A stretch of DNA of 64,000 bases from Adineta vaga (taxonomy: Eukaryota > Animalia > Rotifera): the NCBI GenBank assembly GCA_021613535.1, contig CP075492.1, positions 4,712,001 to 4,776,000 on the forward strand, given 5' to 3'. Positions within the stretch are counted from its first letter, which is position 1, and each line of letters begins with the position of its first letter. A program made the position numbers and the translations under genes. Below the pieces are notes generated by a model. The model made no database searches. It saw only the letters and a list, made by a program, of their open reading frames with translations, and was not told the origin of the DNA. Below, in pieces: positions 8,316 to 64,000 of this stretch.

Positions 8316-11133
8316 ATGGCGACAGGATCTTCATAGTAAATTCAATTTTCTTAGGAAATAACTATTTCATTTGTTTCTTTTTAAGTAATGAAAAATTATC
8401 TTGCGGTTTATGTAAAACATCTATCAGCAAGGCTCTATATCGTGCTCATGTTGCTGAATGTGGAACGAAGAAAACATGCGCTTTATGCGGAAGAGAAGTA
8501 GACAGCTTGACTGAACATTATGAAAGATGTTCAGGGGGAAATAATTCCATCAATAGTATGTATCGTAGTCAACAAACATCTGCGGTTCCTCGGGTAAGAT
8601 CATATCGCAAAAAGTTTTAACCGTTTTCTAATGACGAAATAATAATTTGTTGGTTCTTAAGACTTCAATAAATCCAACAACTTATACTCCCAGACAACAA
8701 AATACAAAGGAATGCCCTTTTTGCTCAATGATGGTACAAGAAGATAATTACACTAATCATCTAGATTTGTGTAGTGCAGGCAGTTCAACAACCCCATCAA
8801 CAAAGAGAATGAGTACAAAGCATTGTGTTAATTGTGATAAAGACATTGACGAAACTATGTATCCTGACCATATAGAAAATTGTTTCAATCCAAATCCAAC
8901 AAGTCATACACCAAAACGTAAAATCACTAGAAAATGTACGATATGTTTTTCACTCGTGGAAGAAGATGATTATAATTCTCATTTGAATATATGTAACAAG
9001 AGGCAATCATCAGCAGCAGCATCAATACATCGAATGAATATGAAGATGTGTATTAACTGTTCAAGAGATTTCGATGAAATCGAATATATTAAACATATAG
9101 AAAATTGTTGTGAACCACTAACAAAAAAACGAAACAACACCAAAGATTGTATCATTTGTTCCAGACCAATTCCTGAATTGGAATTTGAAAAACATGTTCA
9201 TGAATGTCTGTCTAAATCTTCTTCTTCTTACGTAACTCAAAAACCAAAAATAACATACGCACAAAAGACCTGCTTTAAATGGTAGATATCTACTCTATTT
9301 GATATTCTTTTAAAATAATTATTCTTATAGTTCGAAACCTGTGAATTTGTCCAAAACTTCTAGTCATAATATGCCATGTCGATCACAACATATCTATTGT
9401 CTAAAATGTCTCCAAGAATCAATGAATGAACATATTCAATCAAAAACTGCTCCTGTTTGTCATACAAATGTCTGCGATTATGAACTTTCTCGACATGATG
9501 TATCTTGCTTACCACTTGATGAAAATATCATACAAGAGTTACTAGATTTTGTAAAGAATACGCAACGTCCTCAATGTCCTGTATGTCAGTTCTATGTCGA
9601 TTTTAAAACTATGGATGATCTTCAAAGACATGTGTTTTCATGTCCCTCGGAGAATATGATTCCTTGTGAATATTGTCATTGTTTATACAATATGGAACGC
9701 TTGGATGCTCATACACGTCAGTGTCGTAATCTTTCTCGAGCACAACAGCAGCAAGCATTAATAGATTTTCTCCTCCTTCGAACTAAATATCCGATAACAG
9801 AACCACAAATGCGAATGTTTATAGAATATCGAAAGAAGAATCGTCTAGCATTTGATCCACATTCAATTGTTGATGCATTAGTTGAATTCGGTAAAATTTT
9901 CACGTTTTGTTTTTCTACATGCCATTCGTATGTATATATTTCTTTGTAGGTGCTGTTTTTCCATTAGAGGTTCCTACTCGAGATTGCGAAGTATGTTTGG
10001 AAGCAAAAGTATATGATGATGTATTCGTTTTTGGTTGTGATGAAAGTCACAAACTATGCTATGGATGTTTTGAAGATGCATGTGTAGCAAAGATGAACAG
10101 TAATGAAGTTTTAACATGTGGACTCTGTACTTATCAATTATTGGATGGAGAAATAAAACAATTGAGAGTATCAGACGATCGAAAACGAGAATTTTTAGAT
10201 TATCAAGCACAGAAAACATTCAGCATTTACAGGGATGGTACGCAAGGTGTGATAAAATGCCCAAATCAAAGATGCAAGTGGATAGCTGAAGCACGGAATC
10301 CAACTGACCGTTTCTCAGTTACCTGTAAAATATGTGACTTTCAATTTTGTTCCCTTTGTAGTCAACAGTATCACTATCGAACAACATGTCAACAACTTCG
10401 AGAAATTACTCAACGCTGGGTCATTTGGTGTAATACAGGTGAGATTTTTAGAATATTTTCATTGATTTTTCATTTCCTTTTCTACCTTTTTTTTTAAAAG
10501 AGCGTGGTACTTATTTGCAAGCTCGTGCACAACAAGATGCGAATTTTAGGGCTCAATTAGAAGATTACGAAAGACAAAGAGCGGCTAATGAACAACGAAA
10601 TGCTGAACTTCGTCAACGTTATGATGAACTGATAGCGGATGAAAATTATAAAGGTCAAAATTGTCGTCTATGTCCGAATTGTCAACGTGTAGTTCAACAT
10701 CTCGGAGGATGTGATTCAATGATATGTGGTCAAAATTATCATGGTGGTGATCAACAATCGGGCTGTGGTCGACGTTTTAATTGGTCGCAAGCGAGACCTT
10801 ACATGCCTATTGCTAATAATGGTGTACAACAAGTCAGAAATGATCTACCTCGTCCTGAAGAACAGCAAGCTATTGTGCATAAAGACATTCGGTATATACA
10901 GCATTTCAATATATCATTAATCAGATTTTGTAATTTTTGTATTTAGATGTGATTCTTGTCATCAAGAAGTTCAAGGTATTCGTTTTGATTGTTGTCATTG
11001 TGCATCATTAATATTCTGTGAAAAATGTGAACAACGTGCAACTCTGGAACATGCAAATCAAATACGTGATGAGCATAAACAACAACATGTGTTTCAAATC
11101 ATTCCAAGACCTTTGCATAGAAATACTGAATAA
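8316..11133 (+). CDS. RBR (RING-IBR-RING) E3 ubiquitin ligase with multiple N-terminal C2HC zinc fingers and C-terminal ZZ finger, 7 exons
   Basis: Repeated CxxC-x~11-H-x3-C fingers, an extra RING, RING1 (CEVC...CDESHKLCYGC), IBR (CPNQRC...CKIC..FCSLC...H), RING2 CPNC...GGCDSMIC with catalytic Cys, and ZZ (CDSC..IRFDCCHC..FCEKC) in the last exon 10947-11133. Confidence 0.88.
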
Positions 11134-57581: not shown

Positions 57582-58316
57582 ATGGACGAAGACGAACAAA
57601 TGATCGATCCATTTACGACAGCTGATGATATATCTGATGTCACTCTAATTGTCGAAGAGAAACAAATCTTTGCTCATAAATCTATTCTTGGTAAAAGAAA
57701 AAAAATTTCTTGCAAATTTGCTTTTTAATATAGAAAATTTTTTTTTTCGTTTTCAGCCAAAGTTTCACCTGTCTTTGCTCGAATGATGTTTTCAACGGGC
57801 TTTCGTGAATCAAAAACAAATGAAATAACTCTTCCGGGTAAACAATATCTTCATATTATAGAATTATTAAAATGTGTCTATCCAAATATCTTAAAACCAA
57901 TTGATAATATCAATGCGATGTATCTTCTACCATTATCGGATGAATATTCGATACTAATATTACGAAAAAATATCGAGCGTTTTTTAATTTCATCGACTAA
58001 TGTCGCATCCTATAAATATGGAGATAATCTAACACGTTTATTTGATTTATTAGCATTAGCTCAATTGTATCGTTTGAATAAACTTGAAGAACATATTTGT
58101 GAACAATTAACAGATCATTTCAATGTTGAACAATGGAATAAACCTGAACTTCCAATTGAATTACGTTGTCGTTTATTGGAATTATTTGTAAAAAAACAAC
58201 AGATGAAGTTAAAAGATAAGCAAAATAAATTAAAACAATCGGAAGATACATGTTTAAAACAAAAATTTGAAATTCAACGGCTAAAAAGTGAATTAGAAAC
58301 AAATACACAATCATAA
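57582..58316 (+). CDS. BTB/POZ-domain protein with C-terminal coiled coil, 2 exons
   Basis: SDVTLIVEEKQIFAHKSILAKVSPVFARMMFSTGFRES..NEITLP across intron ~57690-57756. Confidence 0.9.
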
Positions 58317-59350: not shown

Positions 59351-60364
59351 ATGTCATTCATTTTGGAGATGAATGAGAAACTTAAATCATGTATAGAAAT
59401 CTTTCCTGATGAACTCTGGTTCGAAGTATTCACTTACACACCATTTTTTGATCGGTATAGTTGTTGGTGGAATTTGAATACTCATATTAATGCTATTCTA
59501 CGATCTATGCCAATTTATATTCATATTAAATCCAATAATAATGGCAGTAATACTGATTTTACAAACGTATTGAAAACGTTTTCTTTACAAATAACAAGTG
59601 TTAAAGACGAACTTTGGCGTATTAATTCAAATACGAAACCTACGCCAGTCGACCTCGTTTCACTTGTCAATCTTCGTTCACTTTACTTGGCCCAATACAA
59701 TCCTGATCAATTGCAAAAGATTCAAAATCTACACTTTCTCACTCGTCTTTCTCTTCCTTGTAATGATTTTACAAAAAAATTTCTTCTAGAATCTGTTTTG
59801 AGTGAAGAAGGAACAAAGAACTTTCCAAATCTTCGTTCAATTGGTCGTATTTTATGTGGTTACAATGAGTGTAATAACTCTTATTTGCCTGTGGTCGTAA
59901 ATTCAATAATTCAACATATAGACCTTGTTGTTACAACATGCAGTTCGACGATCGATTTTATTTCAAAACTACCGGCATTAAATACAATCAATGTGAGTTA
60001 TATAGCTAATGGGAGCGGTTTTTCTTCTTCTTGTTACATTTTGGCGAAATTTTACCGTTTCAATACTGATCATTTAGTTGGCAGTCCATCGAAGATGAGT
60101 TCAAATTTCACACTGATGAGCTTCGCTCCGTATATATCTTGTCTTCGCCTTGATTTTTATGGTCATTGTGGTTTTGATGAACTCGCGCGTCTACTTCAAC
60201 GATGTTCTACTCTCCAACGATTTCGAATTAAAATCAAATACTATTCCGAAATTTTTGATATCTCTGCTATTCGTCAACTGAGTCCTTTCTTTGTTCATCT
60301 TAGTTTCGGAAAAATTGACGAAGTAACAAAAAAACCAATTATTATTGGTCAGTGGTCATCATAA
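59351..60364 (+). CDS. F-box/LRR-like protein
   Basis: IEIFPDELWFEVFTY...WWNLNTHINAIL followed by LRR-like NLRSLYL, PNLRSI and PALNTINV. Confidence 0.78.
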   Translation: MSFILEMNEKLKSCIEIFPDELWFEVFTYTPFFDRYSCWWNLNTHINAILRSMPIYIHIKSNNNGSNTDFTNVLKTFSLQITSVKDELWRINSNTKPTPVDLVSLVNLRSLYLAQYNPDQLQKIQNLHFLTRLSLPCNDFTKKFLLESVLSEEGTKNFPNLRSIGRILCGYNECNNSYLPVVVNSIIQHIDLVVTTCSSTIDFISKLPALNTINVSYIANGSGFSSSCYILAKFYRFNTDHLVGSPSKMSSNFTLMSFAPYISCLRLDFYGHCGFDELARLLQRCSTLQRFRIKIKYYSEIFDISAIRQLSPFFVHLSFGKIDEVTKKPIIIGQWSS

Positions 60365-60514: not shown

Positions 60515-63500
60515 TTAAACTGTGTAGACAATTTTCAAATAGGGTAAAGCTTGACCATAACGATAGATGATATATTCTGTTTGTGTAGTGTGTTTTCCAA
60601 TAACAGAATGAGAACCTTTTGGAGCAGAAACTAATGTATTATTAGTAGTAGTTAATATCGATGGTACACCTAATATAACTTTGTTGTAAAACATAACATG
60701 TGTATTATTACTTGAATCAACACTAGTATAACCATGTGATTTTTGAGGATCATCAGCAAAATATGCACCATGACCTAAACATAGATTGTAGAAAAATGAT
60801 CTTTGTTTCGACAAATCGAAAAGCGAGTATTTACCGTATAAACCACTCGTATTAAAAAATCGATCGTCATAACCATCTTCAGTAATTCCTTCGATACCAG
60901 TTGATTTTGTTCCATGAAATAGTTCTTGTTCATTTGGATTTGCTGCTGGACATTGTTTTTTAATTAACTTTTTCATTCCTTCATATGTTTCTTCCAATGA
61001 TGGATTGCGTATTTCTTCAATTGACACAATTTTTGCACCCGGAATTCTTGCCATTTTAGTACAAATTTCCGTATATAAAACAGCTGATCTAGGTAATGGT
61101 ACAAGAATTGCATGATATTTAAAATGTGGTTGTGGAATAACAGATAAAGCTGAATCCATCAGTGTCCATTTTCGTACGTTGACCATTTTGTCAATTCGAA
61201 TTCTGAGATTGTTATCGACAGGTCGAAGAATTTGAAAACGTTTATGTTTGATATTATCCACAATGGTTTCTAATTCGATTGAATAAGGTTTTTGTGCAAT
61301 ATCAATACGCATGCCAAGTTCATGAGTATAATCTTTTTCTAATGATAAATTATTTACATCAAAATCAATACGATCCTGTGTTAATGCTACATGAGGTTCA
61401 ATTAAATCCATTGTAAATGGACCAGTAGGTGCATCTTCATCAAGTAATAGGACATATCTCCAATTATCATAACAGACCTTACATGAAATATCATATTTAT
61501 ATAATTCATCTTGAAATTTATCAATATCGAAATAAGCATGTGATGGTAGATGACAATCTAAATCGCATGGAACAACCTCCTTATCTAAAGCTGGAAGTGT
61601 ATTTGCATATTGAATCCATCCTTTCGGACTGGCATGCGCTGCTGTTGGCCGACCAACATCACGATTAATAACCCAATCTCGAACAAAGCCACCTTCTAAT
61701 GTGCAATCAAATTTGCAAACGGCAATCCATCCCACTACTTCCATTCTCGTTTCTCGTGTTGCTTTCACACCTTTGGTACCGTTATACAAGTCGATTGTTG
61801 TTCGTTTACTATCGGTTATACGACCAATTCGATCTTCAATATCTTGACAATTTTTACGCATTTGTGGACGAAGAACTCGTGGAGAAAGACCTAATACACA
61901 CGAATAAAAGTACGCATAGTATATAATAATGACTATTATTTACCTGCATTTGGATGTCGAATAACAGCACACACTTGCAACCAACCTATAAAAGCAGAAA
62001 ATTCTTGTCGTACTTTCTTATTTTCTGAATCTCTTCCTTTGACAGTAATTTCACATGTTTTCGTTGCTGTATTACTATTAATAGTAATTTCAACTTGTTT
62101 CTGTGCTTGCCAACGCCATTTCATTGGATTAAAAATTCGTACCATTTTCATCACACTTTCAAGATTACGTTCAAAATTTTGATGCGCAGCAGCGGTTGCT
62201 AAATCTCTCAAATTAAATTTCAATTCAGAAATCATCTGTTGTCGAAGATGTAATTCGGCATTAAGAACAGTACCCGATGGGCCTTTCAGTAATAGTGTTC
62301 CACTACCCATTTGCATATTAATTCTACTGGAGAATTTTGATAATGCTGTTGTATATCGACTATCAGAATTTAAATACGTTTCTTCTTCATTACTCAATTG
62401 AACTCGACGTTCAAGTTGATGTTCAAGCCATTCAGGTTTAATTTCACCAACAAAAGAAAGAATTGCTGTTGCACGAACAGCAGTTGAATGACGAATATCT
62501 CGTGCTAGAATAAGTGAGACAGGTGCTGAATTCATTGGTCGCGTTAATGTCGATTGTAGATCGAGAATAGCTGCATCACCTTCACCATTATATCGTTCAA
62601 AATGCAAATGTTTATCATGTAATTCTCTTTTCGAAACAAAAACATTATCATAATAACCATCTAATAATGATTTGGCAACTAATTCCCAATCACCAGATAT
62701 AACTTGTGCAGCTTCACGAAAATCATCGGATAGATTAAATAATTTTTCTAATGTTGTATATCGTCGAAATGCTTGTCGAATAATATGTTGTATATCACGA
62801 AGACCTTTCGCCGTACAAACACGATCAAAATCAAATTGTTTCGGTGGTACGGATTGTTTAACAAGAAGAACTTCATTCATTACATTTAATAATGTCATAA
62901 AATCACCATCAGGACTTTTTAAATTTTGTGGAATACTTTTAAATATGACTGTTGTATTCAATACACCCAACATACTTGAAAGATAGATAAGATCACGTCC
63001 ACAATTGTAATGCATAAGTGCAGCTAATACCGCTTTTGACATAGCAAGCGAACCAAAATCTGGTAATTTCGAAAGGAGCTTACCATCCTTAGTTAATTGA
63101 TCGCTAGATGCACTACTTAAGATACCTAACGAACAAAAAACAGCAAACTAACAAAGTTGTCAATAGATAAGTTGTCTACTTACCTAATCCTTGCAATTGT
63201 CTGAGAGTTGCATTGATTGCTGGTTGCGAAGGTCTATCTGGTAAGAATTGTTTTACATATTCGAGTCCTTTTTTCAATGGTGATTTTCTTAATGAAAATT
63301 CTAAATTCATTAAATCTGATTGACATATTTGTGGTATTGGATATTTCAAAGCTTCAGGTTTAAAACTATATAAAGCATAATATTCTCCTGTTTGAGTTCG
63401 ACCTAAACGTCCACGTCTTTGTTTAATCGTCGATTCTGCTGCACGTAATTCTTTTAATACAGTTCGTTTTGATTCCACATCATACACAGGCGTATTAATC

Positions 63501-64000
63501 ATTCCTGTATCGACTACATATTTTAATGAAGGAAACGTTAATGATGTTTCAGCAACAGTTGTAGAAAAGAAGACTGTTCCATGTTCGATATTTTCTTGTT
63601 GAACATTTGGATGTTGAGATTGAACAAGTGGATAGGCAACAATTGTTCCTCGACTAATATCATTTATTAAACGAGTGCATTGATTAACTTCAGAAACGGA
63701 ACTAACGAAGCAAAGAATTTGATCATGTCGTTTACGTTTTTTACATAATTCTTGGACAATATCGAGAACATTTTCATTTGGACGTGAAATTGTATCAACA
63801 CGATGTAAAGTACCCATTTGTGGCATTTGAAATTCAGCTAAACCAGCTTGAGGAATTTTTCGAAAGAGATCCGGTACGGATGCATTCAAAGTTGCGGATG
63901 AAATAATTACTTTCATTTTGGATTTCAATTCCGGTTTATTTGTTAATAAACGAGCTAATAATGCTAAACAAAGATCAATATTTACTGATCGTTCATGAAC
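60515..64000 (-). CDS. DEAH-box RNA helicase - HA2 - KH-like - class II nucleotidyltransferase - PARP catalytic fusion (5' end outside the window)
   Basis: Helicase motifs VHERS, SSATL, STTVAETSLT and QRRGRLGR; HA2 (LTKDGKLLSKLP); GGFVRD...DLD...RIDFDVNNL; PARP LFHGT/GAYFA/TEYIIY. Introns 63126-63183, 61891-61943 and 60775-60834 all restore the frame. Confidence 0.88.

Follow-up and report, generated by a model that had tools for sequence, protein, structure and literature searches.

The right edge of a 64,000-nucleotide stretch of the Adineta vaga genome (contig CP075492.1, positions 4,712,001 to 4,776,000; hereafter the window) carries a minus-strand gene that fuses a DEAH/RHA helicase, a putative nucleotidyltransferase (NTase) of the pol-beta superfamily and a poly(ADP-ribose) polymerase (PARP) domain. 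The gene (C3:4,772,515-4,779,466) is expressed, and its five exons, which amount to about 2,244 codons, give one transcript and one chain. The gene extends off the window, and the neighbouring DNA is numbered here as L009 (window position = L009 position + 57,999). The order of domains along the chain is ankyrin repeats, a WWE-like segment, a coiled coil, the DEAH/RHA helicase, HA2, a conserved linker, the NTase and PARP. Each of the three enzymes is familiar in kind; what seems new is the fusion, and the NTase family, which no curated model recognises. In the literature we found no paper on the architecture, the NTase family, DUF5769 or rotifer helicase-PARP proteins, and both the architecture and the NTase family appear to be undescribed.

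The genome of A. vaga comprises 100.8 Mb in six contigs; its GC content is about 31% and its introns measure about 55 nt. A preliminary description of the window had joined three open reading frames (ORFs) through three short introns, and these ORFs and their GT..AG borders were located on the minus strand where it had put them. RNA contigs were compared with the locus over L009:2450-8400. The three introns within the window (Table 1) are spliced out exactly in RNA contigs of four public runs (X1, X2, X9 and X13, from three studies). A fourth intron of 46 nt, outside the window at L009 7703-7748, is also spliced out in RNA contigs, and all four introns read CT..AC on the plus strand. Intron 2 is bridged by contigs of 1-6 kb. 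One contig of 6,369 nt (X9 record 24) spans three of the four junctions, linking helicase, middle domain and the beginning of PARP. The RNA contigs are about 99.6% identical to the locus, whereas the best paralog reaches only 78% in DNA; their source is therefore this gene or its allele, not a processed copy. Intron 3 is in frame without a stop and therefore reads through in the ORF list. The alignment to PARP12 jumps its 20 encoded residues, and the paralogs are gapped at the same place.

A public protein record, P0346 (1,570 aa; listed as encoded by the window), contains the whole of exons B, C and D together with exon A from residue 102. Its exons are each separated by one split-codon residue and its junctions are identical to those in the RNA contigs. 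The record lacks the 5' exon, its start falling inside exon A; in the RNA contigs the 5' exon is joined to exon A via the 46-nt intron (L009 7703-9467, window-equivalent 65702-67466). The exons of the five-exon model total 6,735 nt, or 2,244 codons and a stop. A paralog on another contig (L026:1998-8330, G000:C5) is a single uninterrupted ORF of 2,111 codons that includes the ankyrin repeats, the helicase, the middle domain and the first half of PARP. This paralog lacks intron 2 and its frame reads straight through, so the fusion is independent of any splice prediction. The spliced product was studied exon by exon, via this intron-free paralog and via P0346. The preliminary description had claimed one frame through three introns, a single gene rather than two split at 61890-61945, and the order DEAH helicase, HA2, NTase, PARP in one chain. 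The contigs, P0346 and the L026 ORF bear it out on all three points.

The middle domain had been called an NTase of the type found in CCA-adding enzymes and poly(A) polymerases (PAPs). Pfam returns solely a sub-threshold DUF5769 match for it. The PolyA_pol family (PF01743), which the preliminary description had expected here, gives no match to the middle domain at E<=1. It matches one of 36 relatives (E 0.081), and genome-wide it finds four other loci, none of them from the helicase-NTase-PARP family. No PDB sequence matched the middle domain at E<=10, whether by sequence or by profile, and Pfam searches of the window domain and its relatives gave no Mab-21 or OAS match that would point to cGAS, OAS or CD-NTase enzymes.

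With a profile of nine paralogs, a search of 1.84 billion proteins yielded 284 representative clusters at E<=1e-3. An alignment (A2) of 36 NTase sequences, reaching down to 25% identity, was used as input to AlphaFold2 (AF2), and the resulting model of the NTase domain has a pLDDT of 91.9 and a pTM of 0.90. It replaced an earlier AF2 model from the nine paralogs only (pLDDT 56.9), for which the Foldseek matches were all weak, though to NTases. In the VIA search the best seven matches of the model are class II CCA-adding, A-adding and PAP enzymes and TENT5 (Z 10.3-6.7). These are the Aquifex A-adding enzyme (3wfo, Z 10.3), the Thermotoga CCA-adding enzyme (3h37, 9.0), a bacterial PAP (3aql, 8.9), 4wby (8.6), TENT5B (8.5) and the Arabidopsis (9kma, 7.4) and Bacillus (1miv, 6.7) CCA enzymes. 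The best class II heads (3wfo, 3h37 and 3aql among them) align at Z 10.3-8.6 over 156-168 residues. A tail at Z of about 5-6 includes other pol-beta NTases, among them cGAS-like enzymes, OAS2, CD-NTases, MenT toxins and pol X. Foldseek agrees, with prob 1.00 and E 5e-4 to class II heads of 3h3a and the 3wf series.

The secondary structure of the model includes E63-65, H67-74, E109-113 and E158-163. Like the class II heads, the domain has a strand-helix junction of the GGxVRD type, a DxD strand and, on the strand next to it, a third acidic residue; D-F-x-[VI]-N stands where motif B (RRDFTIN in the class II enzymes) would be expected. Among the 36 sequences G66, R70, D71 and D111 are invariant, G67, D109 and D/E161 are kept in 34, D175 in 35 and N179 in 30. 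The features of the pol-beta superfamily, which are the hG[GS] loop, the DxD strand, the third acidic residue and the alpha-beta-alpha-beta-alpha-beta core, are all found in the model and its conservation, nearly every structural match is to a pol-beta NTase, and VIA and Foldseek find the class II head fold in the AF2 model. Among paralogs the dN/dS of the domain is 0.15-0.6, which indicates purifying selection on the sequence.

Unlike the class II enzymes, the A. vaga NTase is negative for PF01743 and is embedded between a helicase and a PARP domain. D-F-D-V-N is at the expected place of motif B, but the RR of that motif (RRDhTxN) is not conserved. No EDxxR (motif D, the nucleotide template) is evident in the consensus. 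The neck, body and tail domains that hold tRNA are absent: the NTase ends after about 250 residues with PARP directly after it, and there is no PolyA_pol_RNAbd-type Pfam match. The gap from GG to DxD is 42 residues, compared with 13 in the rotifer's own CCA-type enzyme, and an hhalign comparison of A2 with the rotifer's own CCA-type heads aligns the GGxVRD stretch only. The insertion noted earlier between GGFVRD and DxD is therefore real, although its size is about 29 aa and not about 35; AF2 models it as a beta-hairpin. In fold and core motifs the modelled NTase is nearest to class II CCA/PAP heads, so the original assignment stands at the level of fold and core motifs, with GGFVRD and DLD nearly invariant. 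It is qualified by the negative HMM, the longer gap, the lack of an evident EDxxR and the missing tRNA-binding body. Since the PF01743 HMM does not recognise the domain, we treat it as a separate, uncurated family and not as a CCA enzyme. The check by AlphaFold and Foldseek that had been recommended for the middle segment gave a pol-beta NTase fold nearest to class II heads.

Outside the rotifers, the NTase has its nearest neighbours among giant-virus proteins and the Gad2-type NTases of phages. The latter make up 28 of the 30 Atlas clusters that lie closest in protein-language features (score 0.95). A search by shape finds two rotifer 'PARP' clusters (TM 0.90-0.94), then a giant-virus (Nucleocytoviricota) cluster (0.61), a Gad2 cluster (0.53/0.69) and PolyA_pol (0.48). 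A search of BFVD gave 54 viral models at E<=1e-3. Most are uncharacterised proteins from mimiviruses, klosneuviruses, pithoviruses and pandoraviruses (Nucleocytoviricota), and a few bear the annotation poly(A) polymerase head or tRNA nucleotidyltransferase; proteins of Fadolivirus, Klosneuvirus and megavirus match at E 2.5e-7. Among the 36 NTase relatives phrog_1614 (nucleotidyltransferase) matches 18 and DUF5769 (PF19073) 26, both weakly. A PF19073 search of the genome and of control genomes gave nothing, and a scan of viral contigs with A2 gave no close relative. Gad2 (PF26128), an NTase-domain enzyme, blocks Gabija. Gad2 and the giant-virus NTase-like proteins, which are partly DUF5769, resemble the A. 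vaga NTase in language features, TM and BFVD scores. They differ from it in being viral proteins of 170-470 aa that stand alone or are fused to RING, F-box or Ank domains.

The helicase core is found by phmmer against the PDB in Prp22/DHX8, Prp2, Prp16, HrpA, DHX36 and Prp43 (7e-33 to 1e-20). The motifs GSGKST, DEVH, SAT and QRRGRLGR of a DEAH/RHA core are all read in the L009 ORF, and Pfam finds DEAD, Helicase_C and Ank matches on the L009 ORFs. The DEAH helicase that had been recognised by VHERS, SAT and QRRGRLGR is confirmed by Helicase_C in exon A and by the Prp22, DHX8, Prp2, Prp16 and HrpA matches at about 1e-32 (range 7e-33 to 1e-28). The HA2 region placed after it is likewise supported. 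A profile of exon B (A3, 12 sequences) matches over residues 4-158 the HA2 region of S. pombe Prp43-like, DHX8, DHX15 and DHX35 structures (E 2e-5 to 1e-3), and two of the 12 relatives have a Pfam HA2_N match; the window exon B sequence has no Pfam HA2 or OB_NTP_bind match.

Exon B closes with a linker of about 170 residues that is conserved across 15 relatives (alignment A4). This tail has no significant match in Pfam or the PDB, and an Atlas feature search gave no usable match. Two KH-like segments had been described here, and the conserved linker is real. The hints at KH are a match to KH_DTX3L in one paralog, L026 (15.5 bits against a cut-off of 27.4, E 0.015), and one to the vigilin KH domain 2ctf with profile A4 (E 0.23), and both are weak. 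Pfam finds no KH domain in the window sequence, and KH identity is an unproven lead. The 5' exon contains ankyrin repeats (Pfam Ank_2, 1.9e-18) and a WWE-like segment that scores 14.4 bits, below the PF02825 cut-off of 21.1. Its W..W..F pattern is conserved in alignment A5 and the public record of the relative P0008 lists a precomputed WWE domain; a profile of the region gave no WWE match in the PDB. WWE identity is weakly suggested.

The PARP domain (PF00644) is matched at 61.6 bits (cut-off 26.7, 9.3e-17) on the unspliced reading of exons C and D, and at 37.2 bits (2.8e-9) on exon D alone. It is nearest to PARP12, tankyrase 1/2, PARP14 and PARP10. The H-Y-E triad is present, and the intact paralogs conserve His, Tyr and Glu as well as the motifs FHGT/YHGT, GAYFA and E-[YF]-I-[IV]-Y; the domain had been described as intact and is so. 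This triad is that of tankyrase and PARP1, in contrast to the H-Y-I/L/Y of mono-ADP-ribosyltransferases. Chain elongation is therefore possible in principle, which would set the domain apart from the H-Y-I/L mono-transferases that it otherwise resembles. From its sequence the PARP is apparently catalytically active.

Just before the PARP core, at window 61027 (L009 3028), contigs of X2 and X9 have 15 additional nucleotides in frame, which repeat the PGAKI codons in tandem; this is probably an allelic indel.

Table 1. Exons, introns, domains and NTase motifs of the helicase-NTase-PARP gene (window positions unless marked L009).
Feature	Position	Strand	Content	Support
5' exon	L009 7749-9467, ATG at 9467	-	ankyrin repeats, WWE-like segment	
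Exon A, remainder	to L009 7702	-	P-loop GSGKST, DEVH, long coiled-coil-like stretch	
Exon A, window part	63184..64000	-	end of motif II (VHERS), SAT, RecA2 (Helicase_C), motif VI (QRRGRLGR)	Pfam Helicase_C 6.6e-9
Intron 1	63126..63183	-	58 nt, GT..AG, phase 1	contigs of 4 runs, P0346 junction
Exon B, first ~160 residues	62644..63125	-	HA2 (winged helix and ratchet) of DEAH/RHA helicases	profile A3
Exon B, remainder	61944..62643	-	presumed OB-like part, then ~170-residue conserved linker including two 'KH-like' segments	
Intron 2	61891..61943	-	53 nt, GT..AG, phase 1; separates helicase half from NTase-PARP half	contigs of 4 runs, P0346
Exon C, first 260 residues	61109..61890	-	predicted pol-beta-fold NTase with class II (CCA/PAP-head)-like core	AF2 model
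NTase motifs	GG 61693-61688; RD 61681-61676; DxD 61564-61556; third acidic residue 61408-61406; DFDVN 61366-61352	-		
Exon C, last 91 residues	60835..61108	-	N-terminal half of PARP catalytic domain; His 60916-60914	Pfam PARP; PARP12/tankyrase/PARP14 alignments
Intron 3	60775..60834	-	60 nt, in frame, stop-free	contigs of 4 runs, PARP12 alignment, P0346
Exon D	60515..60774	-	C-terminal half of PARP catalytic domain; Tyr 60763-60761; Glu 60577-60575; stop 60517-60515	

Downstream of the gene are a BTB/POZ fragment (window 57783-58316, plus strand, 1e-5) and a 337-aa ORF (59351-60364, plus strand) that has no Pfam match. Neither of these two neighbours shows a link to the helicase-NTase-PARP gene.

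The NTase domain is found at 16 matched places in the A. vaga genome, about ten of them intact and about three with stop codons. Family members of 1,900-2,370 aa with Ank, Helicase_C and PARP are present in A. vaga, A. ricciae, A. steineri, five Rotaria species and Didymodactylos. NCBI and UniRef already contain dozens of full-length models from bdelloids, under automatic names ('unnamed protein product', 'Poly [ADP-ribose] polymerase' or 'RNA helicase', and never nucleotidyltransferase). The earlier statement that no characterised protein has this architecture stands in that no published description was found, while the proteins themselves are already in these databases. As they are, and as every domain belongs to a known superfamily, the gene is best described as an undescribed fusion built around an uncurated NTase family.

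Divergent members, at 25-33% identity, are found in other eukaryotes, the range outside the bdelloids being based on four named protist transcriptomes. A Euglena gracilis transcript (P0059) encodes helicase, HA2 and NTase without PARP, and an MMETSP transcript (P0036) encodes helicase, NTase and PARP. P0099 has a PARP domain, P0058 and P0273 do not. Pharyngomonas and Bolivina have shorter forms, and many further members are on environmental contigs. In every long relative examined that has any Pfam assignment the NTase follows a DEAH helicase, so the helicase-NTase pair is the conserved unit; PARP is usual but not universal. The copies in the A. vaga genome, judged from their sequences, show birth-and-death dynamics.

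Several individual loci of the family were recorded. The paralogs L014 (G000:C5:2166250-2167038) and L015 (G000:C3:19421066-19421854) have nearly identical NTase domains (dN 0.003, dS 0.017) on different chromosomes, which suggests recent duplication or gene conversion. Decayed copies with in-frame stops are at G000:C6:34504-37332, G000:C3:209728-210324 and G000:C3:18819394-18820122, and two of them sit within about 0.2 Mb of contig starts and so may be subtelomeric. An inverted pair (G000:C4:9884420-9887344 and 9905907-9908830) lies about 20 kb apart in opposite orientation. Near 0.33 Mb of G000:C4 an ORF in which an ADP-ribosyltransferase exoenzyme domain (ADPrib_exo_Tox, 3e-5) is fused to TPR repeats (L018:2678-3637, minus strand) adjoins another paralog. 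P0042, a 1,965-aa helicase-NTase-PARP relative, is on a 36-kb environmental contig (L033), where the adjoining gene (L033 16446-18473) has WWE and Exo_endo_phos domains.

The nearest characterised enzymes to the NTase all add nucleotides, untemplated, to the 3' ends of RNA. In the TRAMP complex (Trf4/5 PAP, Mtr4 helicase, Air1/2) and in TUTase pathways a pol-beta NTase tails RNA 3' ends beside a 3'-to-5' RNA helicase in surveillance. We hypothesised that the A. vaga protein may act in a similar way. The helicase cassette would bind and thread single-stranded RNA, and the attached NTase would add untemplated nucleotides to the RNA 3' end, like Trf4 beside Mtr4 in TRAMP or like TUTases. The tail might mark the RNA or serve as a loading tail. 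The targets of subsequent ADP-ribosylation by PARP could be the protein itself, proteins nearby or the ends of nucleic acids. The part with Ank, WWE-like and coiled-coil segments could recruit partners. The copy-number turnover, together with the kinship of the NTase to giant-virus and phage anti-defence NTases, favours a conflict role (antiviral or anti-transposon RNA surveillance) over housekeeping. The preliminary description had proposed an RNA-triggered effector that would unwind foreign RNA and then either tail it or make a messenger, with ADP-ribosylation as its output; of these two options the messenger is the less likely. We infer an RNA-tailing and defence function; for the whole reading, in which a helicase-fed NTase tails RNA 3' ends with PARP output in conflict, we consider the balance to be even.

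A number of points weigh against this proposal. The mechanism is drawn wholly from domains, and the PolyA_pol HMM is blind to the NTase domain. The domain shows no evident EDxxR, the neck motif by which CCA enzymes select CTP/ATP, and has neither the tRNA-binding body nor the tail. DNA, G-quadruplexes and R-loops are also substrates of DEAH/RHA helicases. Pairwise dN/dS among the paralogs shows no sign of positive selection. The protist members make the module no rotifer invention, which weakens a purely lineage-specific immune story. Many A. vaga 'PARP' genes rise after irradiation and desiccation (PMC10809525).

The last point belongs to an alternative in which the protein is a DNA-damage or desiccation enzyme. 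In that case the helicase would resolve DNA/RNA hybrids or structured DNA, the NTase would extend DNA ends like terminal transferases and PARP would signal damage, as part of the radiation-induced PARP repertoire of bdelloids. Some DEAH/RHA helicases do act on DNA structures. Seventeen A. vaga 'PARP' genes are over-expressed 2.5 h after irradiation and nine after rehydration, and the tables of that study include at least one gene annotated Helicase_C+PARP+WWE+HA2 (PMC10809525). The row of this gene, which is not mapped to the present locus, has small or negative fold changes. The PARP domain is nearest to PARP12, tankyrase, PARP14 and PARP10 and not to the DNA-dependent PARP1-3, and it has no WGR or regulatory domains. 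The NTase is nearest to the RNA-acting CCA, PAP and TENT5 enzymes, while pol X and TdT match at Z of about 5. We consider the damage role unlikely.

A second alternative is that helicase-bound RNA switches on the NTase to make an oligonucleotide or cyclic signal, like OAS, cGAS and the CD-NTases, with PARP as a parallel effector. The pol-beta superfamily is common to all of these, the fusion is to a helicase of the nucleic-acid sensor type, and the nearest phage family, Gad2, is described only as a Gabija-blocking NTase enzyme. In the structural comparison, however, the cGLR 8gjw, OAS2 (9h1z), CdnD (7to3) and CdnE (6e0m) reach Z 4.8-5.2, against 8.6-10.3 for CCA/PAP heads, and this difference of about 5 against 9-10 makes a messenger synthase less likely. 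The GGxVRD and DFxxN motifs belong to 3'-end-adding enzymes, and no candidate receptor is linked to the family. This alternative seems slightly less probable again than a damage role.

The NTase-like domain might also transfer nothing and instead gate the helicase or PARP, either as a scaffold or as a regulatory module that binds nucleotides or RNA ends. The unusual 29-aa insert between GG and DxD, the failure of the curated PolyA_pol model and the presence of pseudo-NTases such as NF45/NF90 among the weaker structural matches would all fit with this. The three metal-binding acidic positions and the GG loop are nevertheless kept in 34-36 of the 36 sequences, which is unexpected for a decayed active site, and we find a non-catalytic domain improbable. 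That two adjacent genes, one for the helicase and one for NTase-PARP, were misread as one could be supposed from prokaryote-style metagenome gene calls, which split the exons into 'proteins' of 340-460 aa, but it is refuted by the bridged junction of intron 2, by P0346 and L026, and by the same order in proteins of about 2,000 aa in other bdelloids and unrelated eukaryotes.

Returning to RNA tailing, TRAMP offers the closest functional analogy, the likeness being in the shared logic of an NTase with a helicase, by analogy alone. In TRAMP the activities are spread over several polypeptides, with a Ski2-like helicase, an NTase of the Cid1/Trf4 type and no PARP. The A. vaga protein also resembles the antiviral PARPs (ZAP/PARP13, PARP12, PARP14/PARP9-DTX3L), both in the relationship of its PARP domain and in the WWE-like segment and the possible DTX3L-type KH-like hint. 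It differs from them in having a helicase and an NTase in the chain, and in having no CCCH fingers and no macrodomains. The closest analogy among PARPs is that of ZAP/PARP13, which partners the DEAH helicase DHX30 (PMC4987287); there PARP and DEAH helicase are paired in trans, in the A. vaga protein they are fused in cis.

More broadly, the family may be a hitherto unrecognised class of single-chain eukaryotic RNA-conflict enzymes, in which a DEAH helicase feeds RNA 3' ends to a non-tRNA class II-like NTase and an H-Y-E PARP writes ADP-ribose on proteins or RNA. The NTase lineage would be shared with Gad2 and giant viruses, as a module traded between hosts and viruses. We offer this wider view tentatively and regard it as doubtful; if true, the protein would be the first animal immune effector with a CCA/PAP-type transferase. 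The structural kinship with Gad2 and giant-virus orphan proteins means that biochemistry here could inform those families. As members of the family are counted simply as 'PARPs' in expression studies, they may be mis-assigned to DNA base-excision repair. Genome defence and stress tolerance in bdelloids are known to be unusual. Should the NTase tail the RNA that the helicase delivers, the protein would amount to a TRAMP-like surveillance system in compact, cis-fused form with an ADP-ribosylation output, and this would give a function to a family of proteins of about 2,200 aa that is abundant in bdelloids.

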